DNA of 64,000 nucleotides, from NCBI GenBank assembly GCA_950097015.1, contig CATNEN010000039.1, positions 16,492,001 through 16,556,000 of the forward strand, written 5' to 3'. A program made the position numbers and the translations under genes. The DNA is from Macrostomum hystrix. Taxonomy: Eukaryota; Animalia; Platyhelminthes. The notes below the pieces were generated by a model. It was not told the origin of the DNA. It saw only the letters and a program-made list of their open reading frames with translations, and made no database searches. Positions within the stretch are counted from its first letter, which is position 1; every line of letters begins with the position of its first letter. This document shows, piece after piece, positions 9,027 to 64,000 of the stretch.

Positions 9027-9034
9027 TTGGAAAA

Positions 9035-9590: not shown

Positions 9591-9949
9591 TATTGGCTTT
9601 ACGAGTTATAGATTTCAACAAAAATTGGTCTTTTACTTAGACGAAAAAAGAATTTTCGCATTGTTCAGCATTTTTGTTTTCTACATTAAAATCGGATGTA
9701 ATCTATTTTTATGTAAATTGTGCTTGGTTTTGCATTGTACACAATGTATTTTGCCATTCAAAAGCAACCAAATTGATTTTTCGAGTATTAATTTTTATGT
9801 ACATCGCGTTAAAAAACTATTTTACACGTTTATTGTATTATGCCCAGTAATTAAGTCATTACAAAAAACATTGACTTCCAACAAAATGTCAAGATAAAAA
9901 CTTTGCGTACACATTTATTATTTTATTATTTTTCACTGTGGGCGGGCTA

Positions 9950-10700: not shown

Positions 10701-10807
10701 GGACGCCCAGGTTTTCTTAAGTCACCCTAGGTTCACCCTAATTGGACGGTATTCAACCGCATAGTTGTAACATCTGAACTTTTTTTCTGATTTCAGTTGT
10801 GCTCATT

Positions 10808-10838
<31 letters not shown>

Positions 10839-10842
10839 GCCA

Positions 10843-20451: not shown

Positions 20452-20885
20452 GGGGTAGAGTCTACGGTAGATTTGGTAGTCTACGGTAGATTTGTTAGAG
20501 TCTACGGTAGATTTGGTAGAGTCTACGCTAGACAAGGTAGAGTCTACGGTAGACAAGGTAGAGTCTACGGTAGACAAGGTAGAGTCTACGGTAGACAAGT
20601 TAGAGTCTACGGTAGATTGGGTAGAGTCTACGGTAGATTTGGTAGAGTCTATGGTAGATTGGATAGAGTCTACGGTAGATTGGGTAGAGTCTATCGTAGA
20701 TTGGGTAGAGTCTACGGTAGATTGGGTAGAGTCTATGGTAGATTGGATAGAGTCTACGGTAGATTGGGTAGAGTCTATGGTAGATTGGGTAGAGTCTACG
20801 GTAGATTGGGTAGAGTCTATGGTAGATTGGGTAGAGTCTACGGTAGATTAGGTAGAGTCTACAGTAGATAGAGTAGAGTCTATGG
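20452..20885. repeat. 21-bp minisatellite (GTAGAGTCTACGGTAGATTGG)n
   Basis: About 20 copies. Confidence 0.95.
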
Positions 20886-32600: not shown

Positions 32601-35600
32601 CTAATATGCAGCTGGACTGTGATGGCCGCATGAGCCTGACTGTTGGTACGTGCGTCTGTCCGAAAGCGTCCTACAAACGTCGATACATATTGAAGAATTT
32701 TAAAAGCGACAAGGATCTAAAGCACCACCAGAAGCGTAAAATTTTTCTTCGTGAAAGACTAGAGCTTCAACTAGAAGCAGATGGCACTGTGACTGAGGAG
32801 TCAAATCTAGTTGAAGGTTCGGTCACGGATGAGGATGACACGAAAGACCTGCGGTCCACTTCTATGTTGTTGTTTGACAAAATGAAGCCTATTCAAAAAG
32901 GCCGTGAAAGGCGAATTTCAAAACAAAAGCGAAGACAAAGAAGACAAAGAAGGAAGCAAAATGACTGGCACGCAACAATTGATTTCTTCGAATCGGACAG
33001 CAGTGGTTCTGATAAAGTTGACGAGTTGAAAAGCGAATTCGACTTGCGCCTCGCGGACGCGATTCAATCAGAACTGGCCAGACACCGACCGCGACGATCC
33101 AGACAATCATGGCCACCAACGCCGCGGAAACAATCTGCTCGACCATGGTTTCAGCGTCCATGCCTCGGAAGCTAGCCTTTGTGTTAGAGCCCGACCTTTC
33201 CGAGTTTGTAGTTTTGGAAGTTATTAAAGAAAGTGAGCTAGAGTGCACAATATTTCTGGTGCATCACGTGTGCTCCAAACAAGAGTTCGCGCCAGTTACA
33301 TCCATCAGAGAATTGAAAAGCCTGGATAATCGTATCGGTGTCCTGCGCTCAAAGTCTGTCTCGATTAAAACGAGCGCTCCATACTTCAAAGAATTTAAGT
33401 ATCGCATCGATGCATTGGCAAAGAGCGTCGAAAATGTCGGAGTCCGAGGCCAGAATGACTGCCATCTGAGCCCTGCCGATGTTCAAGACACCAACCACCG
33501 CACCCATCAATGCCGAGCTGGTGCTAGCGCCCGACTGCGAGATCTGCTGTCAACAGCTGTCCACCGGTGACAGCGTCGACTCTTTCGCCGACGGCGCTAC
33601 CATGCTGAGCGAGTGCGGCCACCGGTTCTGCAACAGCTTCTGGTTGCAGCACGTGTCTGGCAGCATCGCCAGGGGTCGGGCGGACATCTGGTGTCCCGCA
33701 TTCCAATGCAAGACGGCTCTGGACGCGGCCACGCTGCTGTGGTTCTGTCCGGCCGATCTTGTCTCCGCTCTGGGCTCGGCCACATTCCGTTCGTGGCTTT
33801 CCGAGCAAAGCGAACGGCGTCAGCGACGACTGTGCCCTCGGCCGAGCTGCGGTCGAGTGCTCGAGAGTCGGGCCGGGGTGAACACGCTGTGCGACTGCAG
33901 CGGGTGCGGACTGTGCGTCGGCTGCGGGCACGAGCCGCACTGGCCCTGCGACTGCGACACGGCTGCTAAGTAAGTAGTTCAATACGCTCGTAGTAAAAAT
34001 ACCACGGGGGTAATAATGCCCATATTTTTCTTCAAACTGTGTCTCCTAAAATTGTCAATTAATTGCCATGAAAATGCAAACATTTCGGCATCGTCAAGAT
34101 ATTCAAAGATTCTTTTCGGGGTGTCTGCATGCAAAAACAACTTATTGAGGCATAGTTTTTCTGCTCGCAAAATTTCATCATTAAACTATGTCGGCTATCG
34201 ATCTTGATCGAATTCTAATGATTATATTGTTGATTTTTTCATCATTTTTGAGCCTATATGGATTCGAGGTTTAGACAGAGCAATGCAAATTTTTCATGTC
34301 ATCAGGGTATTCGATAAGAATCGCTGAATACCTCGACGATGCGGACGTCGGATGTCGTAATTTAGTTTATCCAAAAGGATCGGCTGCAACCACATGACCT
34401 GTCCGTGCGGTGAGCACTTCTGCTGGTGGTGCGGCCTGCCGATGACGGCTCAGGTCCGTGCAGCAAGCTCAATTCGATCAGTTCGAAATCTGGTTTTAGT
34501 TTCCAGCAAGTGCTCACAGTTAGGGACTCGATTCTACTGCCGAACAGCCGGCAGTCTCGCGTGTACTGCACTGCCGTCCGCATTCGGCTAGCCAGACAGT
34601 CGGCAAGGTGGCTGCAATCGGAACACGCGGCTAGCAGGCTGAACAATTTACTCTCAGCTTACTACACCAGGTGTCAGCTGAAGCTGCTCTGCGTGCCAAA
34701 TCAGCATCGGAGCAGCTTGTACAGGTGGTGAGGCAGGCCAGCTTTGAGGCTGAGTGCACCTACGCTCACCTTAGCAACAGGCAGGGTTCGAAACGCTTGC
34801 AGAATGCGCAATGGAGAAGTGGTGGGCGATCTTTAACGGCCAATATTGGTCAGCTAGTGGAGATTTTGATCAATGAAATTGACCGTTGGATTGCCTGCAG
34901 AAGAAGCGTCGCCTGTTGCATCGCGCAATGGCCGTGAAGGAAATGAGAAGAAGCAACTGTGAATAACGATTCATTTTGGGTTTTAATAAAATAAAATTTT
35001 GAATTACTATGCGTTACAATTCATTAAGAAACTGTAGCGAGAGCTTTGCTACAAAAACATGATTTTGAAAAAAATTACTTTGAAGGTCGGGGGTTCGATT
35101 TCCGACTCCACTTGTGCAATTTGTGTCCATTTGAATTCAGCCAGCTGGGGAATGAGTACCAGTATTATCCGGAGTAATTGAGAGTGGTTTTGGTACCTGT
35201 CCATGGACTGAACAGCCGCGCGCAGCCTTCAGATGTGAACTAAAGCAATGCAGGGTTATCTGTCTTACTAGATGGCACAGATTGAACCAGTGGAGTCTGG
35301 ATTCGAACTCCCGACTTCAAGTTGTGAGTCCACGCTCTAACCACTAAGGTAAAATGCCTCTAAAATAAGGTGAAAAATATACTAAAGTTAAAATGAGGTA
35401 TTGTAAAGTAAAAGTGCACACCTATAGCTTAGCCTCAATTCGTACGCTCAATACTTGCAAACTGCGCGCTATTTTTAGAAAATAGAGCTGAGCAATGCTT
35501 TCGTTTCCAGGCGATGCACTTCATGAATTGACGCGCAATTGCACCACTTTCTATTATTAGTTTTGTCCTACAATTCAAACTTGAAAAATAACTCTAAGCA

Positions 35601-38600
35601 AGTAGGCGAATAAAAGCTCTACTAACAGTAGAGTAGTGAGGGTCCTGCAAGACTTTTTCATAGCCAGTGTTGCACCGCTTGCGCCACATTGTGTTAAGTA
35701 TTCTGTGGGGGAATCAGTTATGTACACTGCCCCTGTCAGTGATCTATTTTTAGATCTGCCTCAGGGTCTGGCTAACGGGTGACGACACGCGGCGAAAGCC
35801 CCACCCCAAGCCCCAAGCAGCGGAGACAGTTGCTATAAATAAGAGAGCGGCTATGGTGAAATTCTATTCAAGAGAGAGAGAGAGAGAAGACCAGCTCTTC
35901 AAAGCTTCAATTGCAGCTTGCATTTTGTTTTATTTTTTTAGGCTGTAAATTTTTTCTTACTAGTTAAACAAAAATGGGCCTGTCTGGACGCAGACGAGCT
36001 AAGCCGGAGAATCGCAAAAACAAAGCTTCATCAGCGCCATCAAGTCAGGACTGTCATCAAACTCATCGACTGCAGGATCGCGACAACCGGCGCCTGGGTA
36101 AAACCTACCGTAGAGTGTCCCATAAGGAGGCCAGAGAGAGGAAGTCTACTAACCTACTGTCGTTTGACGTCAATCGAGGCTGGAACAACGACCTGATGCC
36201 GGCGGAGCAGCCGACGCACCCGGAGATCGGGGCGTCCCCGAACGCCAATTTGTTCAACAGGAGCATGATTCATCTGATGGATAAGGAGTGAGTTCTTGAT
36301 GCGCCAAGCCTTTACTTGACCACTGGATTTGTCTTCCTTGATTATATCTGATCAATCAATCTAGCTCGCACATGTTCGTTCATGCCATTCAGCTTCACAA
36401 GCACCGTGACCTACTCGCTCAACAAGAGGCACCGCTGGGACTTCACCAAGCAACTGACAGACGAGTACGACTCCAAGGAGGAGTTGAAGTCGCAGAATGT
36501 CTTTATCTCCGAGGCCGTCGCCCGCGGCCGCAAGCAGCCAGCCGTGTGGAAGGTGCTGACGAACGCAGCCTACACTGCAGACGCAGCCGATGAATTGCGC
36601 AAGCACAAGAAAGAGCTTGGCAAAAAGATTTCCCGCCTGACCAGCGAACAGAAGAGGGAGACAAAGAAGCACAAGAGCGCCCAGCTGAAGCAGCAGGTGC
36701 TGCAGACTGACCGGTTTCAGTTCAGCGACAGGGTGAAGGCTTCGCAGACTGAGCGAACTCTGGTGAGCACTGTGTCGGGTACAGGCGTCGGCTCGATTAA
36801 TTTGAGCTCCATCAAGCGCAACTGCAACCTGTGGAATCACCTGTACAACGTGTCGCCCAACGCCGAGGAGGCCAGGCTTAGCCTTCAACGAGACTTCGAG
36901 GGCCGGATGACTATCTCCGTGGGCACCTGCGTCCCCAGCCCGCACGTGGACGTCAGGCGGTGCACCCAGTCTGAGAAGGACACCAAGCTGGAAAAGCTGA
37001 ACGAGCGTAACTGGCCCACTCCGAGGCAGCGGGAGCGAATGACTCAGAAGCAGAGGCGCTCCGAGATGGAGATGCAGCTGGACATGGACGGAGAGTGGAG
37101 CCTGGTTGAAACGCCAGCGAACGAGGTCGACGATGTCGACTGCGACTTCAGCCGCCCATCGGAGGTGGTTGCTCTAGTAGACTTCGCCAGGCCAAAGATT
37201 TCGGTGAATCGCAACAAGAAGCTGGCTGCCAAGGCGCGAAAGCTTCGCATGCAACAGCTGGAGCAGAAGAGGAAGCACCGAAACACAAGCGACAACACTT
37301 CTGGCAGCAGCTCTGGCTATGACTCGGGATCAGATGGCGGCGAAGATAAGGCCGGCACCGGAACGAGCGTTAGAGAAGAAATCGAGCCAACGGACGTCCG
37401 GCTCCTCGAGACCATGAGAGCGGCCCTGACTGCGACCCGACCAATCGTGCAGATGCCCCGGGCAGCTGCTGAGACTACTCGCGTTTCCGAATTGTTCTCT
37501 GAGGCGTCTCACCAAAGCGCTTTGGTTGTCTCTGGGTCGGTGCCTAGGAAGCTTGCTGTGTTGCTTCAGCTGGACCTCTCGGAGACTGTCGTATTTGAAG
37601 AGATCGAGAGCGCGAATGACTCTGAGTTCGCTCGATTTGCTGTTCATCACGTTTGCCGAACAGGCAATAGTTTTGCTTCCAGAACTACAGCTGGCGAGGT
37701 GGCTTCTCAAGCTGACCCGTTCGACTTTCTTCTAGGAATGTTGGCTGATGTGTCAGTTTCTGGACAAGCGTTCGAGAGGAGCGTTGGCAAGAGATGTGAA
37801 GCTTCGATTGGTTGTCCAATCGCTGGGTGGAGGCAGGCGTCGACAATGTCGGAGTCCGAGGCCAGACTGACTGCGATCCGAGCTCTGCCGATGTTCAAGA
37901 CACCAACCACCGCACCCCTCGATGCCGAGCTGGTCCTAGCGCCCGACTGCGAGATCTGCTGCCAACAGCTGTCCACCGGTGACAGCGTCGACTCTTTCGC
38001 CGACGGCGCTACTATGCTGAGCGAGTGCGGCCACCGGTTCTGCAACAGCTGCTGGTTGCAGCACGTGTCTGGCAGCATCGCCAGGGGTCGGGCGGACATC
38101 TGGTGTCCCGCATTCCAGTGCAAGACGGCTCTGGACGCGGCCACGCTGCTGTGGTTCTGTCCGGCCGATCTTGTCTCCGCTCTGGGCTCGGCCGCATTCC
38201 GTTCGTGGCTTTCCGAGCGAAGCGAACGGCATCAGCGACGACTGTGCCCTCGGCCGAGCTGCGGTCGAGTGCTCGAGAGTCGGGCCGGGGTGAACACGCT
38301 GTGCGACTGCAGCGGGTGCGGACTGTGCGTCGGCTGCGGGCAGGAGCCACACTGGCCCTGCGACTGCGCCACGGCTGCTAAGTGAGTAGTTAATTTTCGA
38401 ATCGATTCTATTTTAACTTCAGCGTCAAACTTAATGAGACGAAATCCAAAATCAAACATCCAGGTATCGCTCTAAGATGAAGTCTATGGGCCACGAGAAG
38501 TTGGAACTTCGGGATCTCAACGCTGAGACTAATGTGAACGCCAAGCAATGCCCCTCCTGCTTCCTCATCATGGAGAAGGGAATCGGCTGCAACCACATGT

Positions 38601-41600
38601 CCTGCCCGTGCGGTGAGCACTTCTGCTGGTGGTGCGGCCGTTCGATGAAGGCTCACAACGGCTCCGGACCGTGCATTGACCGCCGCGGGAGCATTCGGTC
38701 CGAGTTTCGCGTCCAGCGTGTGTTCACAGCGCAGGACTCCTTCCTGGTGCCGAACAGCACGCAGTCCCGCCTCTACTGCGCCGCCGTGCGGGCCCGCATC
38801 AGTCGCGGCTCCTCCAACGTGTCGCTGCTTCTGAAGAGTTCCTTCCAGATTCAGTTGGCCAACCTGTTCACATCGCACGCGATTCGGTTCAAGGGCGTCA
38901 GCTGGTCGACGGCTGCCCAGTTGGGCCGGGAGACCTCGATGCGTCTGGTCAGAGCCACCTTGCACGCCAGCTACCTGGTGGAATACTCATTCGCCCACCT
39001 TGACAGCCACCGGGTCGACCGACGCACCAGCGTCGCTGTGCGAGCTCTGGGCAGCCACATCGCCGAGTTGGTCGCGGCAATGTCAACCGAGGTTAAGGAA
39101 CAGTGCCGACGCGGCTACCGCGGACCGAAACAGACTCTGCTGGCCTACGAGAGGCTGATGATGATGCAGAGCTGCCTGGAGAGCAAGTGCCGACTGCTCC
39201 ACTGCATCGTGTCAAATCAGCGAGAACGCAGTCGAGTGCAACAGAACCAGCGATTCAAGCCTGCTAAAGTGTGAACTCTAAAAAATTCTCATTGCGAATG
39301 ACTTGAAGTCTCTCATTCTCCACTCGCACGCTAATAAGTTTATGCTACCTATCCAATAGAAAAGTAACCATTCGCTCGTTTAATACTAAAATTTGATATT
39401 CTACTGTTGGATTTTGTGTTGACTTAATTTTAGAGAGACAAAACGATAGAAAGTATAACTTGCCCAGTTCGGCCTCTAGCACAGCCGCGGCACTTCTTAA
39501 GACTGTGTACAGCTGTTCTGTCCATGGACTAGGGAGGGTTTAAGATTATTGCTAAGCTTGAACTCAAAGCTCAAAGTTAAGCTCTCACCACTAGGCTGCA
39601 AGCTCGCTATCGGACTAAGCATGAAACATCAGATGCTGCACTCTATTCTAAAGTGCCAACCCCTATTTCTGAGTAAAAAACCATAGCAAAAATTGTGCAA
39701 TGGCGAATAAATCCCAGGCGCAAAATGCAATCTCGCTACTGATAGTAGACAGAACACATTCGTGGAATTTATGGAATGATTGCATTTTTGCGTCAAATAA
39801 ATATATTTTCATTGGTTGCTACGGCCAACAAGGCATGACTTACACGAAATCATGACATAAAAATGGAACCCGAAAATTATCTGTAACTCTAAAACAATGC
39901 TATTTGCTTAGCACAATCATTCCCCTAAAAACGTGTGCTTTAGTTTGAAACACGGACTAACCCGGTTGTAAAACTTTTATTTGCGCACAAGAGCAAACAC
40001 TGCTGACCAAATACTTCGTGATTGTCTGGGTCTGTGGCTAGAAAAAATTACTTGTCATGATAGCACACTGCCTCACCTGATAATAGCGCACCCGATAACA
40101 CACTGCCTCACCTGATGATAGCGCACCCGATAGCACACTGCCTCACCTGATGATAGCACACCTGATAACACTGCCTCACCTGATGATAGCGCACCTGATA
40201 ACACTGCCTCACCTGATAATAGCGCACCCGATAACACACTGCCTCACCTGATAATAGCGCACCCGATAACACTGCCTCACCTGATAATAGCGCACCCGAT
40301 AACACACTGCCTCACCTGATGATAGCGCACCCGATAACACTGCCTCACCTGATAATAGCGCACCCGATAACACACTGCCTCACCTGATAATAGCGCACCC
40401 GATAACACACTGCCTCACCTGATGATAGCGCACCCGATAACACACTGCCTCACCTGATGATAGCGCACCTGATAACACTGCCTCACCTGATGATAGCGCA
40501 CCCGATAACACACTGCCTCACCTGATGATAGCGCACCTGATAACACTGCCTCACCTGATGATAGCGCACCTGATAACACTGCCTCACCTGATGATAGCAC
40601 ACCTGATAACACACTGCCTCACCTGATGATAGCACACCTGATAACACACTGCCTCACCTGATGATAGCGCACCTGATAACACTGCCTCACCTGATGATAG
40701 CAGCCCCAGCAGACCGCATGAAGTAGGCTGCAGTTGTTCTTGTCCTGGAGTTTAAATATTCTATCGGCAGCCGTGGCCGCCTCAGACTGTGACAGGGCAG
40801 TGCTTCGCGCCAATTTCAGCAGCCGGTCGAAGCAGCTCGAAGCAGCATAGAAGCTGCACAGGTGGGCCACATAGTGAAAGTCCACGTCTGAAGTGCTCCA
40901 CTTGCTGCCCGTGTCATACTCAACTCGAATGGAACATATTGACAGCTCAGAAGTATTTCGATTGGACAATTCTGTCGAAGTGTTGTCATCATCTTGTTTG
41001 TCCTCCTGGATGATGAATGAGTTCATAACAATGCAGCTGTCTCATTCGACTCACAAATGACAAACTTGGGTACAAAAAACACGTACGTTAGCCATCAACT
41101 TTTAATTGTTTGTGAGTAACACGCTTGTCCTGAAGCATTGTTTGTGAGTAACACGCTTGTCCTGAAGCATTGTTTATGAGTAACACGCTTGTCCTGAAGC
41201 ATGTTTGTGAGTAATACGCTTGTCCTGAAGCATGTTTGTGAGTTATACGCTTGTCCTGAAGCATGTTTGTGAGTAACACGTTTGTCCTGAAGCATGTTTG
41301 TGAGTAACACGCTTGTCCTGAAGCATGTTTGTGAGTAACACGTTTGTCCTGAAGCATGTTTGTGAGTAACACGCTTGTCCTGAAGCATGTTTGTGAGTTA
41401 TACGCTTGTCCTGAATCATGTTTGTGAGTAACACGCTTGTCCTGAAGCATGTTTGTGAGTAACACGCTTGTCCTGAAGCATGTTTGTGAGTAACACGCTT
41501 GTCCTGAAGCATGTTTGTGAGTAACACGCTTGTCCTGAAGCATGTTTGTGAGTTATACGCTTGTCCTGAATCATGTTTGTGAGTAACACGCTTGTCCTGA

Positions 41601-43183
41601 AGCATTGTTTGTGAGTAACACGCTTGTCCTGAAGCATGTTTGTGAGTAACACGCTTGTCCTGAAGCATTGTTTGTGAGTAACACGCTTGTCCTGAAGCAT
41701 GTTTGTGAGTAACACGCTTGTCCTGAAGCATGTTTGTGAGTAACACGCTTGTCCTGAAGCATGTTTGTGAGTTATACGCTTGTCCTGAAGCATGTTTGTG
41801 AGTAACACGTTTGTCCTGAAGCATGTTTGTGAGTAACACGCTTGTCCTGAAGCATTGTTTGTGAGTAACACGCTTGTCCTGAAGCATGTTTGTGAGTAAC
41901 ACGCTTGTCCTGAAGCATTGTTTGTGAGTAACACGCTTGTCCTGAAGCATTGTTTGTGAGTAACACGCTTGTCCTGAAGCATTGTTTGTGAGTAACACGC
42001 TTGTCCTGAAGCATTGTTTGTGAGTAACACGCTTGTCCTGAAGCATGTTTGTGAGTAACACGCTTGTCCTGAAGCATGTTTGTGAGTAACACGCTTGTCC
42101 TGAAGCATGTTTGTGAGTAATACGCTTGTCCTGAAGCATGTTTGTGAGTTATACGCTTGTCCTGAAGCATGTTTGTGAGTAACACGTTTGTCCTGAAGCA
42201 TGTTTGTGAGTAACACGCTTGTCCTGAAGCATGTTTGTGAGTAATACTCTTGTCCTGAAGCATGTTTGTGAGTAACACGCTTGTCCTGAAGCATGTTTGT
42301 GAGTAATACGCTTGTCCTGAAGCATGTTTGTGAGTAACACGCTTGTCCTGAAGCATGTTTGTGAGTAATACGCTTGTCCTGAAGCATGTTTGTGAGTAAC
42401 ACGCTTGTCCTGAAGCATGTTTGTGAGTAACACGCTTGTCCTGAAGCATGTTTGTGAGTAACACGCTTGTCCTGAAGCATTGTTTGTGAGTAACACGCTT
42501 GTCCTGAAGCATTGTTTCTGAGTAACACGCCTTAAAGAACATCAAACAGGGCGGAAAACTTTCATAAGTATATGGTGGACTTTCAAGACAATCGGTCATT
42601 TGGTTTGGAAGCTATCGTGAAGTATAGGCAGTGAGTATTTGAAATAATTTCTTGATCTTTCCCCAGGGTTGAAAAAGAGCGCGGGTTTCTACAATTACTC
42701 CACTCCAATCTAGAAACTTTTGTCCTCCTAATTTAGCTCGTAGTAGTCCTTGATTTGCACAGATGAGTAAATCTAAACGAAATTTACCGTTCTCAGCAAC
42801 AGACGTCTCAGGCACAGCTCAAACTGATCCGCCAAGTCGCACTGCATCGCTTCAACCAGGCGCCAGCTATCGGCGTCTCTGGCGGCGGCAGTCGCGGCGA
42901 TGACGTAACAGTCGTCGGGACCATCGTCGGCTATTCGCAGGGCCGGCGGATTGGTCTTGTTCTGGGCTTTGCGCGACGTCGACGTCGCATTCGACTTGGA
43001 GAACATTGCGGGAGCCACTCGGCAGCTCTTCTGCTGCGGCTTTAGCTTCTGGCACAGTCGATCTACCAGTTCAGAAAGAAAACCCGGCTTGGAAACTGAG
43101 TCTTCCTGGAGTTCCATTGCTTGGCTGTCGTCTGTGAGTTCCGTGAGCTCACCAGGCATATTGGGTGTCGATTTGTCACTCAT
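29697..43183 (-). CDS. Divergent TRP-like multi-pass cation channel. Terminal exon 31679-29697; inferred upstream exons ~41037-40691, ~42612-42529 and 43183-42788
   Basis: The terminal exon has ~6 hydrophobic segments, including FGETVMMFRQVLERFLQLSIIYIICIVIFANLF (S4-S5/S5-like) and HFVYILMFAILTLNFLIASL (S6, LNxLIA motif). An upstream exon has ankyrin-like QDKNNCSLLHAVCWG and a phase-0 donor at 40691 compatible with the acceptor at 31679. Linking the upstream exons is inference. Confidence 0.6.
32179..34937 (+). pseudogene. Ariadne-like RBR E3 ligase paralog A, disrupted
   Basis: Homologous to 35974-39274 but split over several frames (breaks near 33110-33175, ~33470, ~34430, ~34670). RING1 reads CNSFW versus CNSCW in the intact copy. 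The RING2 start is degraded. Confidence 0.8.
35082..35350. mobile_element. Two converging SINE family 1 remnants (35082-35240 +, 35286-35350 -)
   Basis: GGTTCGATT...GTCCATGGACTGAACAGCCG..CAGCCTTCAGATG matches 8342-8610. The minus-strand tRNA head reads TAGTGGTTAGAGCG...GAGTTCGAATCC. Confidence 0.7.
35834..35840 (+). promoter_or_regulatory. Candidate TATA box for RBR paralog B
   Basis: TATAAAT after a GC-rich stretch, 140 bp upstream of the ATG at 35974. Confidence 0.45.
35974..39274 (+). CDS. Ariadne-like RBR (RING1-IBR-RING2) E3 ubiquitin ligase with a long basic N-terminal extension. Exons 35974-36287, 36393-38381, 38464-39274
   Basis: RING1 CEIC...CGHRFCNSCW...CPAFQC, IBR CPRPSC...CVGCGQEPHWPCDC and RING2 KQCPSC...GCNHMSCPCGEHFCWWC with the catalytic Cys. 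Phase-2 GT-AG junctions join in frame. Confidence 0.88.
40058..40702 (-). repeat. 33/35-bp tandem repeat derived from an exon/intron junction; each unit contains CAG|GTGAGG on the minus strand
   Basis: About 19 units of CACTGCCTCACCTGATGATAGCGCACCCGATAA. The first unit overlaps the exon end at 40691. Confidence 0.92.
41106..42530 (-). repeat. 31/32-bp satellite, same family as 23538-26300
   Basis: Reverse complement of the same monomer. Confidence 0.97.
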
Positions 43184-46205: not shown

Positions 46206-48403
46206 TCAACTTTGAGCACACTGACTGCGCGAACGGCCATTTCCGTTGCCGCTAATAGCAGGCCCCGCCGCTAAAGATGGAGTAGACGAGAACTGCTGCT
46301 GCTGCTGCTGCTGCTGCTGCCTTCTAGCGCCAGCCTTTAGTGGAACCGGAACACCAGAGCTTCGCCTTTGGCCAGGCACTGGCGCTGGAAAATTGGACAT
46401 CGACGAAGTTGGCAACGCCTGTACCAACGCTGGCTGCTGTTGCTGCTGCTGCTGCTGCTGGCTAGACAGAAACAGCTGCTGGCTTGTCTGCGGCAATGGC
46501 CGGCGCAGATGATAGCCAACACTGCCGGATAGCATCAGGTCGTCCGTTGTGAGATAAGTTGGATCCAAATCGGCGGCAATGTTTCTGGCTGGCATCGGTG
46601 CAGCCTGATGATTGGTTGACGCAGCAGATGGCTGTGCGGCCGATGACGTGGTGGCCTGGTTAGGCAATCTGGTTGACATCAAAGGACTGTCCGCAAAGTA
46701 ATAGGCGGATACTGGCCGCTGCTTGCTCTGCTGCTGCTGCAGTCTTTGTTCAGGCACTTGATTATGCATCGTTGCTAGCACTTCGCGTTGTTGCTGCTGT
46801 GATATTTGCTGTTGCTTTTGCTGCTGCTGTTCTAGTCTTGGTTGTTGTTGCTGCTGCTGCTGCTGCTGTCTTTGTTGCTGCCTCTGAATTGGCGGCTCTT
46901 GCTTCTGAAGTCTTTGTTGCTGCTGTTGAATTGGTGGCTGTTGCTGCTGTAGTCTTTGTTGCTGTTGTAGTATTTGTTGCTGCTGTTGAATTGGTGGCTG
47001 TTGCTGTAGTCTTTGTTGCTGTTGTAGTATTTGTTGCTGCTGTTGAATTGGTGGCTGTTGCTGCTGTAGTCTTTGTTGCTGTTGTAGTATTTGTTGCTGC
47101 TGTTGAATCAATGACTCTTGCTGCTTTAGTCTTTGTTGCTGCTGCTGAATGGGCTGCAGTTGTTCCTGTAATCTTTGTTGCTGCTGCTGAATAAGCGGCT
47201 GTGTCTGAGTACCATTTGTTGGTCGTTGTTGCTGAAGTTTTTGTAGCGAAACCTGTTGCTGCTGACCGCCAAAAGGCTGAGACTGATTTAAGTTTGACCT
47301 GAATTAAATTAATGAAACAGAGAGCGAGGTTGTTGCCACGGATAGCGAAGGATCGAACAAGGGATTGAAAGGATTAGGGATAGGGATGAAGGATCGAACA
47401 AGGGATTGAAAGGATTAGGGATAGGAATAATTGAACCATATTAGAGGGTTAGAACCTACCTTGGCTCCGGCGGTTGAGGCGGCCGCTCATTAAGCCCATT
47501 GACCCCAGAATCAGCTGCCACAGCTGCGGCTGTCACAGCCTGCCTCAAAGACTGTCTCGTGTGAGCGTAACGCGACGGTGGCGCGTCGAATACTCCGCTG
47601 ATCGCAACGGCGCCTCCGTCGACTACAACTGCGCCGGCCAAAGAGGAGGCGAAAAGCAATCCGCCGGCGCTGTTGGCCGGATTGTCGTAGATTGGCGAGC
47701 CAGGAGCCACCACGGGCAGGCCAAGATCTTGTTCGTCATCGTGTCGAAACCGACTGGCACCGGCGCTGCCACCAGTCTGCACCCAGGCATCGACGCTGCG
47801 CGATCGCTGATGCTGTTGACGATGCCGGCGATGTCTGGCGCGTCGACGTCGATGCCGACGATGATGACGACGCAATCGATAGCGGCACTCGTCGAGTTCG
47901 GCTATGCATCTGGCAAGGCTAGCGTCGGCTTGTTCAATTTCTGACATCAGCCTGGCTAGCTGGGACTCGCTGTCATGAATGCGCCTGGCCAGAGTTGCGT
48001 CGCCGCTGCCGACGCCACTTCGACTGGCCGGAACAACGGCTGGCTCGCTGTCAGAGAATTGTCGTCGACAATAATCAGCTTGTTCGCCGAGCTGTCTTAG
48101 GCGATCCTCCAGTTGGCGTCTACGCGTCAACAGCGCAGCTTCCTGATCCTCCAACGAGTCGCTGTCGGCCGCGTCTAAATCGCCAGCGCCACTAGAGTTA
48201 AGATTTCCGTCGTCACTTTCAACATCGACAGGACGCAAAGTCGTGTTGTTATCGTCGTCGGCGCCGCCCCAGCGTCGAGCCAGATGGGCAGCCAAATCGG
48301 CGTCGCGGTCGCAGAGCTCCCGAGTGGCTTGCACCTGACGGAATCTGTCCAGCTGCTGCTGGCTCAGGGCCCGAGCCTGCTTTAGCATGCGCTGCTGCTG
48401 CAT
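46206..48403 (-). CDS. Uncharacterised coiled-coil protein with a glutamine-rich C-terminal half. Exons 48403-47460, 47298-46206
   Basis: Two long GC-rich ORFs joined in frame by a GT-AG intron (47299-47459). Heptad-like segments, a poly-R/H patch and (PIQQQQQILQQQQRLQQQ)n repeats. Confidence 0.7.
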
Positions 48404-49147: not shown

Positions 49148-52100
49148 CTAGCAGGCCAACAACGGAGCGGCCCTCTCGTGCAATGCCTTGGCGTGATATT
49201 CGAAGCGCGGATCTGAGCGCAACTCTGGCGGGACAGCGGGACACTGCAGCAGCCGATGTACAGCCGGCGGCATCGCCTGCTCAATCTGGCGCTGCTGCTG
49301 CTGACTCGGCCGACCGTCTAAAAGCAACAGGTCGGAGCTGAGCAGCTCAGCTGTGCGAATAAATACACTGTCGGAGCCGCTGGCGTTCTCGCTTTGTGCC
49401 ATAGACATCATCGAGGCGTCAGTGTGCTGATGCTGCAGTCGCTGTTGTTCCAGCTCCTGACTATTGCGCCAGTCGGCTAGCAGGGCCCTGGCCCAGATAA
49501 GGGTGCGCAGGGCGTCGCGCTCGTCTGTCTCGGTTAGATAGGCCAGCAGGTCTAGTGCGCGTTTGAAATGCAGCTCAGACTGATCAATGCGATCGGCTAG
49601 GCCGCTGAATCGATCGATTAGTTCGGCGGCTGTGTACACTCTGGTGTGACGCTGCTGCTGCTGATCCGGATCCCGATGCCTGCCGCCCTTCGGATCTTCA
49701 GCGTCATCATCTGAATAAATAGGAATGTACTATAGTAAGCCATGCCCCAAAACCGGCCCGTTTTCCCTTTCAACAAATATAGTATCCTGTCTCATCTCTG
49801 CCGCATCTGATCTCTCCCGTGTCTCATCTCTGCCGCGTCTGATCTCTCCCGTGTCTCATCTCTCCCGTGTCTGATCTGTCCCGTGTCTCATCTCTCCCGT
49901 GTCTCATCTCTGCCGCGTCTGATCTCTCCCGTGTCTCATCTCTCCCGTGTCTCATCTGTCCCGTGTCTCATCTCTCCCGTGTCTTATCTGTCCCGTGTCT
50001 CATCTCTCCCGTGTCTTATCTTTAGGTTTTCTCAGTGACCCGCAAGCTAATAAGTTTGCCGACCCCAGCTCTAATCTAACCACTAGGCTACAGCCCCCTA
50101 CGGATCGGCCCAATAACATGCAGGTACACTAACCATTGTCCTCCTGATCGCTAATAGCATCCTGCGGCAGGTAGTCCTGATAATCCAACAGTTCTAAGCC
50201 GCGATTAGCCGCTCGCAGAGCCTCAGCCATGCCGCCGCTGCCTCCGCCGGCGCCGCTTGCCAAATAAGCCAGTTTGGCCATAGACAGCAGGCTACGCTTA
50301 CGGCTGGCCAGTCGCTTCTCGCCTCTTGCCAGCGCAGACAGGGTGGACCCGGCGCGACCAAATTGACCAGAAGCGACTTCTTGAAGCCAGGCCAGCGGTT
50401 GCGTGTCCGGATGTTGATGCTGCTGCTGCTGATGCTGCTGCTGCTGATGCACAGTCATGCGCAGCAGTCGGCCCCGCTTGCCAGTGCGCAAATAATAAGC
50501 AGCCAAATGAGTTGAAAAGCCGGACAATTGGGCCTGATAGCGAGACAGCATCTGCTGCTGATCCTGACTGTCTGGGGCGCTCTCGCAAATCTGAATCAGC
50601 AGGTCAAATTCACGATAGCGCTCCGCTAGGGCTACGGCCCGGTCCGGGGCGTCGCATTTCTCCCACAGGGCGAATAGCAGTTCGCGTCTAAAAATGCAAG
50701 ATTGGTCACAAACAAACACTTGCAAATTCTAGCTTATTGAACTGACATTCTCAAATCCTAGAGCTGACATTCTCAAATGCTAGAGCTGACATTCTCAAAT
50801 GCTAGAGCTGACATTCTCAAATCCTAGAGCTGATATTCTCAAATCCAATAGCTGACATTCTCAAATGCTAGAGCTGACATTCTCAAATCCTAGAGCTGAT
50901 ATTCTCAAATCCTAGAGCTGATATTCTCAAATCCTAGAGCTGACATTCTGAAATCCTAGAGCTGACATTCTTAAATCCTAGAGCTGACATTCTTAAATCC
51001 TAGAGCTGATATTCTCAAATCCTAGAGCTGATATTCTCAAATCCTAGAACTGACATTCTCAAATCTTTGAGCTGACATTCTCAAATCCTAGAACTGACAG
51101 TCTCTAATCCTAGAGCTGACATTCTCAAATCCTTAAAAGAAATTACCTGACATCCTCGAAACGGTCGCCACCACTGAGACTGGCAAGCAGCAAGTCCAGG
51201 CACTCGGCAGTATCGGACAGCAGTTCGGCTCGCACTCGGGCCTCAGAAACACTTTGGCCAAGGTGGCCAATTAGTTGACTAGCGATGCCGTGCAGCCATT
51301 GGCCAGAACGATCGTAATCTAGCCAGCGAGACTGCTGCTGCTGCTGCTGTTGTTGTTGCATTTGAAGCACTCTACCCTCGCTTCCGCCTCCCAGACGATC
51401 GGTGGAACGCCTGTAGGACAGCAGATCTCGCGCTAGGCCGGCCATTAAAGAGCCGGCATCAAGGAAGAATGCGTTCAACTCGCGCGCAGTTCGACTGGCT
51501 GACTGGCGGGCCTGCTCAAGCAGCTGGGCGAGGGCCGGAAACAGCTCAGCTGTGCGACTCACCTGGAGGGTTGAAATTTACTTATTTAATAATTCTACCA
51601 CTGTCACTCTGATATATATAATATTCCCCCTATATCTCTTCACTAATCTTCTGATCACGTTCTAATGTCAGCTTCCCAAATATCCCACTCGTATACTTTT
51701 CCTTATTCTTTCTTCCCAAATCTCTCATTCCTGAATTTCTTCCCTAATCTCTCACTCCTATCTTTCTTCCCAAATCTCTCATTCCTGAATTTCTTCCCTA
51801 ATCTCTCACTCCTATCTTTCTTCCCTAATCTCTCACTCCTATCTTTCTTCCCTAATCTCTCACTCCTATCTTTCTTCCCTAATCTCTCATTCCTATCTTT
51901 CTTCCCTAATCTCTCACTCGTATCTTTCTTCCCTAATCTCTCATTCCTATCTTTCTTCCCTAATCTCTCATTCCTATCTTTCTTCCCTAATCTCTCACTC
52001 CTATCTTTCTTCCCTAATCCACCAGCCATATTTTCCCGAACTGATCCCATCCAGCAGAATCCCCGATTGAAACCTCTCGATAGAACAGGTCGCTAGCAGT

Positions 52101-55100: not shown

Positions 55101-57294
55101 CCGCCTCCGCTAGTCGAAGATTGCCCGCCGCCAGGAGCGCCTTGAACCCCGGCGCCGCCATATACAAAAGCTGACACGCGCCGACTAATGCCAGCCAGAT
55201 AGGAGCGACTTTTAACCAACGGCCGGCAGGAGATGCTATCTGGCCGGCAGGAGACAAGATGCAGAGCGCCGCCGGTTGCCGTGCTCAATAAGCAGTGCCT
55301 GCCGAATATGTGACGCAACTGTGAGCATTGCTCACCACGCAGCTGTTGCATCTGAGCCTCGCAATAGCTGGCTGGCTGGCCAATTGATGGCCAATAGTAG
55401 AGCAGGCCGCCAGGACTGGCTGATAGGCAGCCGGCGATAGCGGCAGCATCTGCCGTTGCCTCGCCGGAACTTGAACCCGATGGCGCCTACACAATTAGAC
55501 GGATGGATTGATTAGATCAGGGGGGCTCGGCAAACTCCGGTCCGAGGGCCAGATGAGGTCCTGGAAACTCCAAAAATCCGGCCAGTTGCCTCTTCCAACA
55601 CCTATAGTATCCTGTCTTATCTCTCACTTATCTGGAGATGTGTCTAAGCTCACCCCTGTCTCATCACTTCTCTGTCTAATCCCTACCCTGTCTCGTCTAT
55701 CCCGTGTCTCAACTCTTCCCTGCTTATCCCTCCCCTGCCATCTCTTCCCTGTCTTATCTCTCCCCTGCCATCTCTTCCCTGTCTTATCTCTCCCCTGCCA
55801 TTTCTTCCCTGTATTATCTCTCTCGCCTGCCATTTCTTCCCTGTATTATCTCTCTCGCCTGCCATCTCTTCCCTGTATTATCTCTCTCGCCTGCCATCTC
55901 TTCCCTGTATTATCTCTCTCGCCTGCCATCTCTTCCCTGTATTATCTCTCTCGCCTGCCATCTTTTCCCTGTATTATCTCTCTCGCCTGCCATCTCTTCC
56001 CTGTCTCATCTCTTCCCTGTCTTATCTCTTCCCTGTCTTATCTCTTCCCTGTCTCATCTCTTCCCTGTCTCATCTCTTCCCTGTCTCATCTCTTCCCTGT
56101 CTCATCTCTTCCCTGTCTTATCTCTTCCCTGTCTCATCTCTTCCCTGTCTCATCTCTTCCCTGTCTCATCTCTTCCCTGTCTCATCTCTTCCCTGTCTTA
56201 TCTCTTCCCTGTCTTATCTCTTCCCTGTCTCATCTCTTCCCTGTCTCATCTCTTCCCTGTCTCATCTCTTCCCTGTCTTATCTCTACCCTGTCTCATCTC
56301 TCCCCTGTCTCATCTCTTCCCTGTCTCATCTCTTCCCTGTCTCATCTCTTTCCTGTCTCATCTCTCCCCTGTCTCATCTCTTCCCTGTCTCATCTCTTCC
56401 CTGTCTTATCTCTTCCCTGTCTCATCTCTTCCCTTTCTTATCTCTTCCCTGTCTTATCTCTCCCCTGTCTCATCTCTCCCCTGTCTCATCTCTTCCCTGT
56501 CTCATCTCTTCCCTGTCTTATCTCTCCGTTATTATCTCACCCCTTTCTCATATTCCTACAGCAAATGCGGCCCACTATCGTCTTTTAGATTCTTTCCGTG
56601 GCCCGCACGCTAACAAGTTTGCCGACCCTTGAGTTACGAGGTCAGATGGATAATAATAATCGTTTGGCTAACTACAATGACCTATTATTTAATATATTTT
56701 ATATGAAAAACAAATATACCCATTTTGAAACATAGATAATCTATTTGATCTATCTGGTGCCTACTAGTCTACCCAATCAATCATCAACAATCTACTAGCC
56801 TTATCTAATTTTTTTATCTATCATTAAGTATTTAAGTGCTATTCTATCCAACTTATCAAGTATCTAAAGTCCATCCTCCTTATATGCCAAATGAACTAAG
56901 TAATTAAATTTATATTTAATAAGCAACCTTAGCCATTCCTCAGTGATTTTAAACTCACAGAAAACAGCAGATCAACCAGTTCTGCCCTGTGTGCCAAATC
57001 AGACACACACAGCGGCAATTCCCGACAAATCAAAGGCAGTGGCCTGCCAGTTGTACCGCTGGCCAATTGACGACCGCGCCAGACGTACAAACTGCGGCCC
57101 AGAATCATGCTAGCCCAGCCGCGCCTGTGCAGCCGTACACTGCAAGGCTTGCCACGATTCTCACTGCATCTCAATGCCTCGGCTACTAAAACTGGGAAGC
57201 CGCCGCCACTACCACCAGGCATAGAAGTAATTGGCACAGCCTGCAGATGGCCAGAATCTTCTTCAAGCATCTGGCTTAGATTTGCAGACTGCAT
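49148..57294 (-). CDS. NUP133: Nucleoporin Nup133. Exons 57294-56959, 55486-54947, 54124-53879, 53377-53039, 52820-52074, 51562-51147, 50687-50134, 49710-49148 (true start may lie upstream)
   Basis: FPVLVAEAL..GWA..ICRELPL, LYYWPSI, LAGISRRVS, DRPPTADPRW, IIERVLDDK, DLFYRE|VS, LAERYREFDLLIQICE, KRSLLSMAKLA and FKRALDLLAY are colinear with metazoan Nup133 motifs. Junctions are GT-AG. Confidence 0.92.
49750..50069 (+). mobile_element. Truncated copy of the hAT-Charlie-like MITE with a 16-bp internal minisatellite
   Basis: Shares TATAGTATCCTGTCT.ATCTCT and the 3' end AAGTTTGCCGACCC with 55518-56631. Confidence 0.7.
50740..51133. repeat. 22-bp minisatellite (GAGCTGACATTCTCAAATCCTA)n, Nup133 intron
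   Basis: About 18 copies. Confidence 0.95.
51705..52020. repeat. 27-bp minisatellite (TCTCTCACTCCTATCTTTCTTCCCTAA)n, Nup133 intron
   Basis: About 11 copies. Confidence 0.95.
53513..53808. repeat. 35-bp minisatellite containing AGCCAATCAG, Nup133 intron
   Basis: About 8 copies. Confidence 0.93.
54180..54905. repeat. 303-bp exact tandem duplication built of degenerate ~25-40-bp TTCGATACCTCA subunits, Nup133 intron
   Basis: 54222-54524 is repeated at 54525-54827. Confidence 0.9.
55518..56631 (+). mobile_element. Non-autonomous hAT-Charlie-like DNA transposon (MITE) with an expanded internal pyrimidine-rich minisatellite (16-bp unit in its 3' part)
   Basis: Left end CAGGGGGGCTCGGCAAACTCCGGTCCGAGGGCCAGAT and right end GTGGCCCGC...AAGTTTGCCGACCCTTG are imperfect inverted repeats resembling Charlie/MER58-type termini (CAGGGGTCGGCAAAC). 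No clear TSD. Confidence 0.72.
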
Positions 57295-60082: not shown

Positions 60083-62200
60083 CCATCAAAAACGTATTAG
60101 CACATTTGCTTCTCCTTTTCCTCGATATACATTTTGCAGTCGTGCACTTACCTTCAAATGATAGTCTGAGCAAGGGCCACTAGAAGACCTTATAATCTGC
60201 TCAATCTACAAATTTTTCTTTTACTTTGAAATATACTTTTTGATTGCAAGGATATTGACTGCGATATTTAGGATTTAATCCCTGGATATAGTATTATTGC
60301 ACACGCAGAATTTTTTACTTTAGAATTTTCAGGGGTACACAATACAAAGCAGCAACTTTGATGACTGTCTTAAACACACCCAAGACTGAGACATCCGACA
60401 ATGGGGTTTTAGATGGGGTATTAATCAGACCAAGAGTAATAATTATAGAACTCCATGCCAACAAGAACGAAGCCTTGTTTTAGAGCCATCTGAACTGCAA
60501 ACGAGCCCGTAAGTTACAGTATAAAAAAGAATTAAGTCAGCAATAGCTCAGTCGATTCAACTAACCAACTTTTCACTCAGCGTTGGCCAACGAATGCAAA
60601 AAATGAATGCTGGAGATATACTTGTAGAATTGCTTTTCTTTTTATTTTCACCTTACATATATTAACTTTACCTAAGGTCAAAACAGTATCTGATTCCCCT
60701 AAAGAGGAGTTTACTCCTATGTTATAACAAATTGTGTGCATTTTTTACTTTATTCAGACATTGCTGGACAACAATTTTATCGGCAGCCAATTAGGCAGTA
60801 TGTAGACTTCTTTGCTTAGCATTACTTACCAAAATTGTAAAACAAAAAGGCAAAACAGAATGGGATCTAACTATATGATACGAAGTTCACACGAAACAAG
60901 CTGCCAAAAGATAAGCTACTACACCGATCATGAGGGGGTTTGGATGTAACAAAGTTTTAAATAAGTACAGTTGTGATTGCTAAGCAACATTAATATTGTA
61001 CGATTTCAATTGAAAACCCTAAATATGAAGTATTAGGTTCCCATTTTTTGTAAACCGGTCATCATTTTCACAACGAAAGCAAAGTAGAGACAATATTATA
61101 GCGGGAAAAAACTGAGAAAAGAGAATGGCTTTGATTGGTTGGTTAAAAAAAACAGCTGGAGCAGCAAACACAATAAAAAAACAATCACAACAGACACTAC
61201 GGTGAAAATAATAGAAATGGAAACAGTTGAAAAATTGTTAGAAAAGCATAGGGACACACACTAAACAGAAGCAGAAAAAAACACAAAAAGCAAATTATTA
61301 ACCTTTGCCAAAAATTATGGGCGACATTAAACTGCACCTATTGCCATTTCAGTGACGTTAATCATTAAATAAATAGGAGAGTAGAACAAACCGGCCTACA
61401 AAAAACTTTAGAATGATAATAGAGAGCTGCATTTAAATAATTGCCACATTGTACATTGTTTTTTTGAGTAGTATCATTCGTATTTTTGCTTTATTTTTTT
61501 TCTGATCTCTTTCGCTTTGTACACATACACAACTAGACTTAAAGTAAAAAGGTATGTAAAGTTGCGCCTAGATAGATAAACAATAAGATAGAATTAATAA
61601 GATAATAATACAACGATGGAAAACATGCAAGCTATTGGTAAAGCGCACACGATGCCAGAACTGTACAAATAATAAACGCAAACAAGAACACACTTATCAG
61701 GTAAAGCTAAGGAAAAAACATTTTATTTTTTAAACGAATTTTTTAATATCTAATTTTACTTTGCTACGGCAGAATAAACTAAAAATCTTTAAATGTGAGA
61801 CTACTTTGAATTTAGAGCCTACTTAGTGCCATAGAATATTTGATGCACAACACTTATTAAACAACACCCTACTGCGAAAGTAAGATACCGCGAACAATAG
61901 GACTAAAATTAGAAAAGCCAAGAGTGATAAAAATGCGCTAATTAGGTTGTAATCTTTCATTTTTAGCAAACACAGGCCTACCAATAACCAATTTTCTTAA
62001 ATTTGACAAGAAAAAAATGACACTCGAATCAAGTAGAAATTAACAAATGAGACTTAGCAAAGGGAGGCAGGAAATGATAATTAAAAATAGTAAAAAAACA
62101 CAAAACACACATTAACACTCGCGCCATCTACTATTTACTCCGAACGTAAAATAGACAAGAGTCACTAATTGTCAATAAAAGTAAGACAGGCTGTTTGATT

Positions 62201-62866
62201 TTAGCAAGCATCGCTAGCTGGCAGAGCTTGAATTGGTGTTTCTACTTTCTTCTCAACTAGGGCAGCGGCCAGCTCAGCGGCGTGATTGTCGCCGTTAGAA
62301 TTGGCGCTGTCTCCGTTCAGCCTGCTGGATTTCTCCTCGGCTGAGTCGGCTGGCGGCTGAGCAGCGGGACGATCGGTGGAGTCCTTGCCGGCGTCGCCAT
62401 TCGACTCTGACTTCTCGTCGCTGCTAGCAGGTTTAGCTTCCGTCTCTGGCTTATCACCATCGGCCTTCTTTTCTTCAACTACTGGCACCGGTTTCTCTTG
62501 TTTGTCCGTGTCTTCTTTCTTAGCCTCCTCTGCCGTCCCCTCCTCCTCCTTCTTCTGTTCCTTAACAGATTCCTCTTTGTCCTCAGTCTTCTCGGCGCAA
62601 TCTTCCTCTGCAGAAGCATTGGCCTTCTGTACAGCAGATTCAATCTCCATTTTCTCTTCAGCCTCCGGTTGAGCGGTTTCTGATTCCGGTTCCTTCTTGG
62701 CGGCGGCTTTCTTTGTTGGCGAGGCGCGCGACTTCTTTGGCGACGGCTCAGCTGAAACTGGGGCAGATGTCGTTGCGGGCGGCGCCTCGTCCTCTTTGGC
62801 GGCTAGACGCGACGAACGACGACGTGGCTCGGCAGCCTCGCCAACTGAGCGCTTTCCACGGGGCAT
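62201..62866 (-). CDS. 221-aa intrinsically disordered protein with an HMGN-like nucleosome-binding motif and a long acidic tail
   Basis: MPRGKRSVGEAAEPRRRSSRLAAK...PKK...KKAAAKK followed by an E/D/K-rich region. Strong acceptor (T-rich..AAG) 15 nt upstream of the ATG. GC-rich coding island. Confidence 0.8.
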   Translation of the reverse strand: MPRGKRSVGEAAEPRRRSSRLAAKEDEAPPATTSAPVSAEPSPKKSRASPTKKAAAKKEPESETAQPEAEEKMEIESAVQKANASAEEDCAEKTEDKEESVKEQKKEEEGTAEEAKKEDTDKQEKPVPVVEEKKADGDKPETEAKPASSDEKSESNGDAGKDSTDRPAAQPPADSAEEKSSRLNGDSANSNGDNHAAELAAALVEKKVETPIQALPASDAC

Positions 62867-64000
62867 TGTTTTGTAGATTATCTTAAAAAACGGAAAAAAA
62901 GGTGCAGTGATATTTATCTGATTTGGCTGTCTGTATGTCAGGTTGTGTCAATAGAAGTTTCCAGACCTAACAGAGCTGTTGAATATCGTGACAATTAGTC
63001 TGCAAAAAAATTAAGTTGTTGTACAGAAAATCGTTGATTATATTTAATATCTCTTTAAGGCTTTTAAATTGTGTTAATAACTAGATAATATATAATATAA
63101 TAACTAAATAACTAAACATTCTATATATGTATATAAACATTCTAAACATTCTACATTCATTCTAAATATTTGATAGTCACAAAATATGTATAACACAAAA
63201 ATATTTTACCAGCTACATTGTACAAGCCATGGCACATCTTCAATTTCAATATTGAATATACGCTTCAAGATACTGAATAGTTTGGTAAGAAACTTACATT
63301 ATTTACATTTCAACATTGTATTATTAACACCCTCAACAATATATTTAATCTAATAAGTCATTTAAAATAATTCAAAATCTAGCTTTAACACAAATACACT
63401 TTTTTTGAAATAGCACAAGGTGCATCAACAACAAATCCAGATAGGTTTTGTATCAGAACACATGCTACACTTTCCTGACTATGGACCATATTTGAAATGG
63501 TGGCCTGTATGCTGGAATATTCTGGAGTGCCGAAGCATCCACACAGCAATTTGGCATATATATTTTAGGCATATGAAAAGGAAAGAAAGACTCATTGGTG
63601 TGTCACAGCAAACATTTTAAGCCTTTAAAAAGGAAAAAATATACTGTGTGCAGCTTGCAAAATAAATGACAATTTATACATGAATGTATGTAGGCCTAAT
63701 CATTGGACATATAGATATAGCATGCATGTCATTCTATATCATGTCAAACTAAACTATAGACAAAAATACATTTGTTTAAGGTTTAATTATAATTTATTTG
63801 AATTTAAATTTCTCAATATTTTATTTACATTATTTGATGCAAACCCATTGATTTGTCACATTTTTGAGGTTTTATATTTGGTTGTTTAACATGCAATTTT
63901 AAATGCTGCAAAAGTCATGTACATGTATTAGTGGTTAGGCCTATTGCTTAGAAACTAAGCACAAAACATAGGGGCCTAAATGTTTTCCTGAATAAACACT

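Follow-up and report, generated by a model that had tools for sequence, protein, structure and literature searches.

The HMGN family is defined by a basic nucleosome-binding segment, a nuclear localization signal (NLS), and a negatively charged C-terminal regulatory domain. Its core consensus, RRSARLSA, occupies residues 22–29 of HMGN2 and is critical for nucleosome binding, and phosphorylation of the motif serine turns HMGN off. The lysine- and proline-rich part of the protein that contacts DNA comes directly after the motif. HMGN1, HMGN2, HMGN3, and HMGN5 share an intron-exon plan, and published surveys report canonical HMGN proteins in vertebrates only and none in invertebrates. Similar motifs are present in tardigrade Dsup (RRSSRLTS) and yeast Dot5 (RRSARIAT, residues 6–13), and the nucleosome binding conferred by the HMGN, Dsup, and Dot5 motifs needs the arginines in each case. 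According to cryo-EM structures, RRSAR of HMGN2 and PPRRSSRLT of Dsup both sit on the acidic patch of H2A-H2B, where R26 of HMGN2 and R367 of Dsup serve as the arginine anchor to H2A E61/D90/E92. In the Dsup structure, the backbone of R363 contacts H2B Q47, and S365 contacts H2A E61 or E64. Dsup is basic overall.

An initial annotation had described an HMGN-like protein in an apparently invertebrate genome and had regarded HMGN proteins as vertebrate-restricted. The host is indeed the flatworm Macrostomum hystrix. The restriction stands for canonical HMGN but not for HMGN-like motifs, which are documented in tardigrade Dsup and yeast Dot5. The window analyzed here is a stretch of 64,000 nucleotides (assembly GCA_950097015.1, contig CATNEN010000039.1, positions 16,492,001–16,556,000), and its numbering is used below unless the contig is named. 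On the minus strand, positions 62201–62866 hold a complete coding sequence (CDS) in one exon, consisting of 221 codons and a TAA stop. The product has a mass of 23.4 kDa, a pI of 4.8, and a net charge of −16. The GC content is 57% in the CDS versus 32% in the flanking 3′UTR, and there is no other open reading frame (ORF) of at least 130 amino acids within ~6 kb.

The protein begins with a basic module, MPRGKRSVGEAAEPRRRSSRLAAK (aa 1–24, 62795..62866, minus strand; net charge +6), which contains the core motif RRSSRLAA (aa 16–23, 62798..62821, minus strand), the predicted arginine anchor for the H2A-H2B acidic patch. An acidic spacer rich in proline, alanine, and threonine follows (aa 25–40, 62747..62794, minus strand; net charge −4, pLDDT <50). 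It leads into a basic patch, PSPKKSRASPTKKAAAKK (aa 41–58, 62693..62746, minus strand; net charge +7), with two S/T-P-x-K sites and the NLS-like tetrad KKSR. The remaining 163 residues form an acidic tail rich in glutamate, lysine, alanine, and aspartate (aa 59–221, 62204..62692, minus strand; net charge −25, pI 4.3). Basic clusters were found at aa 2–6 (PRGKR) and aa 44–58 (KKSR/KKAAAKK); a bipartite NLS is a feature of the HMGN family. We infer that the patch at aa 41–58 provides both a DNA contact and a nuclear signal. AlphaFold2, run on the single sequence, predicted no globular domain. It predicted one long single helix in the tail (aa 67–122, corresponding to 62501–62668, pLDDT ~75) and a short one (aa 193–205). 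By computation, the protein is predicted to be fully disordered apart from these helices, with its charges segregated along the chain.

The elements quoted in the initial annotation, namely the N-terminus, the SPKK/KKAAAKK patch, and the long acidic tail, were all located in the ORF. It had also been proposed that four elements reproduce both the order and the spacing found in HMGN. The order was confirmed, but the spacing was not, because the 16-residue spacer at aa 25–40 intervenes. To our knowledge, canonical HMGN has no counterpart of an acidic spacer between the motif and the lysine patch.

Transcript contigs from four public runs of two studies were mapped onto positions 60501–66400 in window numbering. 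GT..AG joints of a neighboring gene appear in the same runs, which are therefore RNA-derived. A genome-identical contig of 2,330 nt from run X5 spans positions 60576–62882 and contains no joints. At its 5′ end, it carries 23 extra nucleotides past 62882 (reverse complement, TGCGAAGACTCAATTTATTGCAT) that, together with the overlapping G, match the 3′-terminal part of the Macrostomum spliced leader, which is 35 nt long (CGGTCTCTTACTGCGAAGACTCAATTTATTGCATG; PMC8629364). A contig from run X1, which is labelled as a different organism and is 1–3% diverged from the assembly, reaches position 63000 and then passes into a 23-nt spliced-leader tail. The minus strand has two spliced-leader acceptors. 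The proximal AG lies at 62882..62883 (exon start 62881; X5 contig) and is preceded by a polypyrimidine tract, TTTTTTTCCGTTTTTTAAG. The distal AG lies at 63000..63001 (exon start 62999) and is indicated by the X1 contig and the polypyrimidine tract TTTTTTTGCAG.

The 5′UTR measures 15 nt in the proximal isoform (62867..62881, minus strand) and 133 nt, free of ATG, in the distal isoform, and the first genome-encoded ATG in both is that of the 221-aa ORF. The terminal AUG of the spliced leader is in frame with the ORF in the proximal isoform and would add the residues MIIYKT, a possible N-terminal extension. In the distal isoform, the spliced-leader AUG opens an upstream ORF of 10 codons. The AT-rich 3′UTR of at least 1.6 kb (60576..62200, minus strand) is joined to the CDS in one X5 contig, and the ORF list contains just short ORFs and no second cistron in this interval. 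The mRNA is composed of the spliced leader, a 15- or 133-nt 5′UTR, a 666-nt CDS, and a 3′UTR of at least 1.6 kb, all in one exon. The spliced leader joins just upstream of the ATG, 15 nt (or 133 nt) before it, which rules out the ORF as the final exon of some larger protein. A search of the genome for paralogues (220,453,370 bases, 42 contigs) returned solely the gene itself. We conclude that 62201–62866 is a genuine, transcribed, single-copy gene of M. hystrix.

A small divergent gene lies upstream on the plus strand. Its exons are at 64817–64891 and, in the numbering of locus L019 (L019 position plus 64,000 gives the window position), at 1175–1247, 1633–1812, and 2081 onward; the transcript contigs contain three GT..AG introns for it. 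Its exon peptides, translated singly and unjoined, include AADSKREEFRKYLEKAGVLDALT and VLVGLYEEPEKPNNALEFLKLHLG..., and we take it to resemble the c-Myc-binding protein MYCBP/AMY-1. Searched against Pfam, the exons gave coiled-coil noise only. An operon with this neighbor was rejected because the neighbor lies on the opposite strand (GT..AG on plus). HMGN1-type synteny was likewise rejected, as the adjacent gene is presumably MYCBP-like and not WRB, BRWD1, or APEX1-like. The neighbors of HMGN1 and the amphioxus APEX1-like gene are discussed in PMC10188112.

Elsewhere, the window contains ordinary animal genes, namely those for UDP-glucose dehydrogenase, Sec20, RING-IBR ligases, and a nucleoporin. 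The ligase genes are two adjacent paralogues of RING-IBR (RBR-type) E3 ubiquitin ligases (33100–33980 and 36380–39280), whose RING-IBR segments are near-identical and whose N-terminal parts have diverged. A glutamine-rich ORF of QQQQILQQQQRLQQQQPPI repeats (46206–47111, minus strand) lies upstream of a 315-aa ORF at 47456–48403 with no Pfam family. A tandem array with a unit of ~31 codons (LLTNMLQDKRVTHKHASGQACYSQTCFRTSV), open in several frames, occupies 23400–26500 on the plus strand. The same unit forms a second array, inverted, at a distance of 15 kb (41000–42600, minus strand). Further tandem repeats were found at 9000–11850, 14000–15700, 20470–20870, 51660–52100, and 55500–56630 and at L019 2467–4566, and one tandem repeat interrupts the UDP-glucose dehydrogenase region at ~10.8–11.8 kb. 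Situated between and inside genes, the tandem repeats yield long spurious ORFs on both strands.

Across the contigs of related samples, which are 1–3% diverged, the first 55 codons are invariant, the N-terminal module included. Replacements occur downstream of codon 55 (A56S, S149I, E151G, and L203P) and account for four of six substitutions, the other two being silent. Indels in the CDS sum to 3 nt among these samples; those in the 3′UTR measure 1–2 nt each and would, because of these sizes, break a reading frame. Run X1 has 4 substitutions in 666 nt of CDS versus 16 in 859 nt of 3′UTR (Fisher p = 0.04). These differences were counted in favor of the CDS being constrained relative to the 3′UTR among samples 1–3% diverged.

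RRSSRLAA is identical to the HMGN consensus RRSARLSA at six of eight positions, with all three arginines kept. Its hexamer RRSSRL is identical to that of Dsup, and a proline stands two residues upstream, as in both Dsup and HMGN. S18 is the counterpart of the HMGN serine whose phosphorylation acts as the off-switch. We presume that the likeness to HMGN1 and HMGN2 extends to the flanks (EP-x before and AK after the motif), the MP-basic start, and the KKAAAK patch. The N-terminus of HMGN2 is printed in a review as PKRKAEGDAK, which is consistent with such a start. Judged by its residues, the flatworm motif is a fit to the experimentally defined acidic-patch motif of HMGN and Dsup. The functional class combines R-R-S-x-R-[LI] in a disordered region with acidic-patch residues that are kept in the host histones, and both were found in M. 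hystrix. The residues in question, H2A E56, E61, E64, D90, E91, and E92 and H2B E101 and E109, are all present.

The initial annotation had pointed to H2A-H2B as the surface on which the peptide should be modeled. We used the H2A and H2B of M. hystrix from a histone cluster on the same contig (contig positions 19196001–19203500). This cluster, ~2.6 Mb from the HMGN-like gene, holds two H2B genes with differing N-terminal tails as well as H2A and H3. The complex was predicted from H2A residues 12–120, H2B residues 24–121, and aa 1–45 of the flatworm protein, alongside three controls. The peptide sat on the acidic patch, with ipSAE values of 0.72, 0.73, and 0.71 versus 0.00 in all three controls. 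The docking mark had been attained in 51 of 78 solved complexes, compared with 2 of 108 mismatched pairs; peptides and three-chain jobs fall outside this calibration. Contacts agreed to at least 92% between runs, and the partner pLDDT was at least 57.

The confident interface comprises residues 15–21 and 23–24 of the protein, A60, E61, E64, L65, and D90 of H2A, and V40, Q43–P46, E101, L102, and H105 of H2B. In the model, R16 touches H2B Q43 at the elbow (the counterpart of human Q47 in an alignment by eye), S18 touches H2A E61/E64, and R20 touches H2A E61 together with H2B E101/L102/H105. This modeled register is that of the Dsup cryo-EM structure (R363 to Q47, S365 to E61/E64, R367 to E61/D90/E92). 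The docking result may reflect recall of complexes already solved for Dsup, HMGN, or LANA. We take the complex model as moderate support for acidic-patch docking, and it is silent on affinity.

A further proposal had been that the first 70 residues be compared with the HMG14_17 profile of Pfam (PF01101). The comparison gave 9.8 bits (E = 2.1), below the 23.5-bit cut-off, and the first 50 residues gave 10.1 bits (E = 1.7), again below it. HMG14_17 was nevertheless the sole family reported out of 24,736, and the alignment was collinear, placing aa 3–62 on profile positions 2–53. The score corresponds to ~1e-4 per model, a rate at which chance alone would yield a few such proteins in a proteome. 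The match, which is not significant, points to resemblance and falls short of a proof of homology. When the genome was scanned in six frames with PF01101, no match appeared, but the controls were equally silent, which makes this blank uninformative. The full-length protein matched no Pfam family and no domain.

Homologue searches found no homologue for the full-length sequence in a library of 5.8 billion proteins (candidates of 121–387 aa considered), for the N-terminal 63 residues as a query of their own (one candidate), or for region 1–63 of the full protein (56 candidates). A phmmer search of the N-terminal 63 residues against 1.84 billion representatives gave 0 matches at E ≤ 0.001. These blank results carry little weight because the query's own sequence was also absent from them; the libraries searched apparently contain no Macrostomum proteins. 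Among PDB chain sequences (phmmer; queries of 221, 63, and 30 aa), no nucleosome-binding protein was matched, and a "virulence factor family protein" at E = 0.65 was dismissed as a chance match. The ESM Atlas returned no usable match for aa 1–63 and, for the whole protein, chance-level E/K-rich clusters (DUF4775, score 0.80). A literature search for HMGN in flatworms or neoblasts found nothing.

Set beside HMGN as a whole, the flatworm product is likewise a small disordered protein. It has a basic segment near the N-terminus, the core RRSxRLxA with EP before and AK after it, the motif serine at the phospho-switch position of HMGN, a lysine-rich NLS-like patch followed by a negative C-terminal region, and modeled docking on the H2A-H2B acidic patch. 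Measured against the HMGN family definition, the core motif is present at aa 16–23 within a segment of net charge +6 (aa 1–24), and aa 59–221 supply the negative C-terminal domain. This tail is alike in composition and not in sequence. The shared intron-exon plan, in contrast, is absent, transcript and genome being collinear and the gene intronless. The flatworm gene also differs in its spliced-leader trans-splicing, its score below the Pfam cut-off, the 16-aa acidic spacer between motif and lysine patch, its length of 221 aa compared with ~90 aa for HMGN1–4, and its flatworm host, whereas canonical HMGN is reported from vertebrates only. On these sequence comparisons, HMGN membership is not established, and we have not filed the protein in that family.

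Likeness to the other known acidic-patch binders is more local. Dsup shares with the flatworm protein an invertebrate host, disorder, and the identical RRSSRL preceded by proline. The modeled contacts of the first arginine with the H2B elbow glutamine, of the serine with H2A E61/E64, and of the last arginine with H2A E61 match those in the solved structure. The Dsup motif, however, lies near the C-terminus of 445 residues, whereas that of the acidic 221-aa flatworm protein is at aa 16–23, and, as far as the search of PDB chain sequences goes, the likeness is confined to the motif. Dot5 likewise has an HMGN-like motif a few residues from its N-terminus that binds the acidic patch, and a separate element that contacts DNA. 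It differs in possessing a thiol-peroxidase domain, whereas the flatworm protein has neither a Pfam domain nor a predicted globular fold. Arginine-anchor binders of the type of the LANA N-terminal peptide are comparable as short unstructured arginine peptides, predicted here to enter the H2A E61/D90/E92 pocket. Their sequences are different, the flatworm motif following the HMGN/Dsup pattern.

The initial annotation had left two readings side by side, an unrecognized HMGN ortholog or a convergent analog. The former is not supported (a score below the Pfam cut-off, no homologue in the libraries searched, no intron), and a convergent analog or very distant relative is the defensible half. We favor, on balance, the interpretation that the gene encodes a 23-kDa disordered HMGN-like acidic-patch binder, convergent with HMGN or very distantly related to it. 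An independent origin of the motif, or divergence beyond detection, is judged more likely than simple HMGN orthology.

The alternative that fares best is true descent, which would make this a protostome orthologue of the ancestor of vertebrate HMGN1–5, date the family to before the vertebrates, and imply a loss of introns here. The match exceeds the 8-aa core: EP before the motif, AK after it, the start with MP and basic residues, the KKAAAK-type patch, and the negative tail all occur in HMGN order. The collinear match to profile positions 2–53 of the one Pfam family reported argues in the same direction. In addition, the authors of the cryo-EM study make the case that the motif is older than the protostome-deuterostome split. 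We nevertheless consider descent unlikely. Its score of 9.8 bits against a cut-off of 23.5 is one that a few proteins per proteome reach, the libraries searched contain no intermediate homologues, and the intronless gene departs from the plan common to HMGN1, HMGN2, HMGN3, and HMGN5. Moreover, the neighboring gene offers no HMGN-type synteny, the published surveys report no invertebrate HMGN, and short linear motifs readily converge. That the whole HMGN layout predates the bilaterian split and the flatworm protein is a bona fide protostome HMGN is, to the same degree, doubtful.

Ranking behind descent, and in our estimate slightly more improbable, is that the motif is fortuitous or has another use, such as a basophilic-kinase site or nuclear/nucleolar targeting. 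On this view, the gene would encode a disordered acidic protein of a generic type, with no docking on the acidic patch, for instance a chaperone of histones or ribosomal proteins, a nucleolar protein, or a charge buffer. The sequence RRRSS also conforms to the classic R-R-x-S kinase consensus, the tail evolves freely, and the nearest clusters in the ESM Atlas consist of E/K-rich proteins from arthropods named "nucleolar protein 58-like" or "triadin" (at the chance-level score of 0.80). Chance expectations for the motif were estimated analytically from assumed typical amino-acid frequencies. The strict core is expected ~3 times per proteome, which favors a fortuitous origin, and ~0.17 times if only the first 30 residues of each protein are counted. 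For the extended pattern EPxRRS[AS]RL[SA]AK, the expectation is ~6e-6 per proteome, and a match of these 12 residues at the extreme N-terminus argues against chance. In a six-frame translation of the window and the fetched loci (236,332 aa), RRS[AS]R[LIVM] occurred once, in this ORF. The controlled complex model, which passes in the published binding mode, also speaks against a fortuitous motif, as does the finding that three otherwise unrelated proteins require the same 8-residue motif to bind nucleosomes. It is very improbable that the protein is a genome protectant of the Dsup kind, coating chromatin and protecting DNA against hydroxyl radicals, for the shared disorder and exact RRSSRL hexamer are set against a strongly acidic flatworm protein (pI 4.8, net charge −16), a motif that is N-terminal here and C-terminal in Dsup (aa 360–370 of 445), and a PDB chain sequence search with no match to a nucleosome-binding protein.

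For the HMGN-like acidic-patch binder, computation supplied the gene model and transcript, the motif, the disorder and charge segregation, and the modeled docking, and these form the basis of the following proposal. We infer a nuclear location, a DNA contact, a function of the tail, and a phospho-switch. We propose a nuclear architectural protein, which would bind via RRSSRL on each nucleosome face. The RRSSRL segment (R16, R17, S18, and R20) would serve as an arginine anchor inserted in the H2A-H2B acidic patch, and the SPKK/KKAAAKK patch would add a DNA contact, and with it affinity, as well as nuclear import. The long acidic tail might compete for basic partners, such as the tails of linker histone and core histones, and so loosen and open chromatin. 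HMGN proteins in general have been described as opening chromatin in this way. The off-switch would be phosphorylation, at S18/S19 or at the S/TPxK sites, which would release the protein. The flatworm protein probably works like HMGN, and most like the long-tailed HMGN5.

What is new is a flatworm protein with the whole HMGN layout and no detectable family. Dsup and Dot5 share the 8-residue core, whereas the flatworm gene, an expressed and concrete candidate, reproduces the full layout. The vertebrate restriction of canonical HMGN is not yet overturned by it. Should the protein be a protostome HMGN after all, the family would be ancient and evolve too fast for recognition, with Dsup and the flatworm protein as its visible remnants. 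M. lignano, a member of the same genus, is a model species for transgenesis and RNAi. If nucleosome binding holds true, the gene would add spiralian evidence to the question of whether the HMGN design is old or arose repeatedly, and would provide a handle on chromatin decompaction in a clade that serves as a model for regeneration and stem cells.
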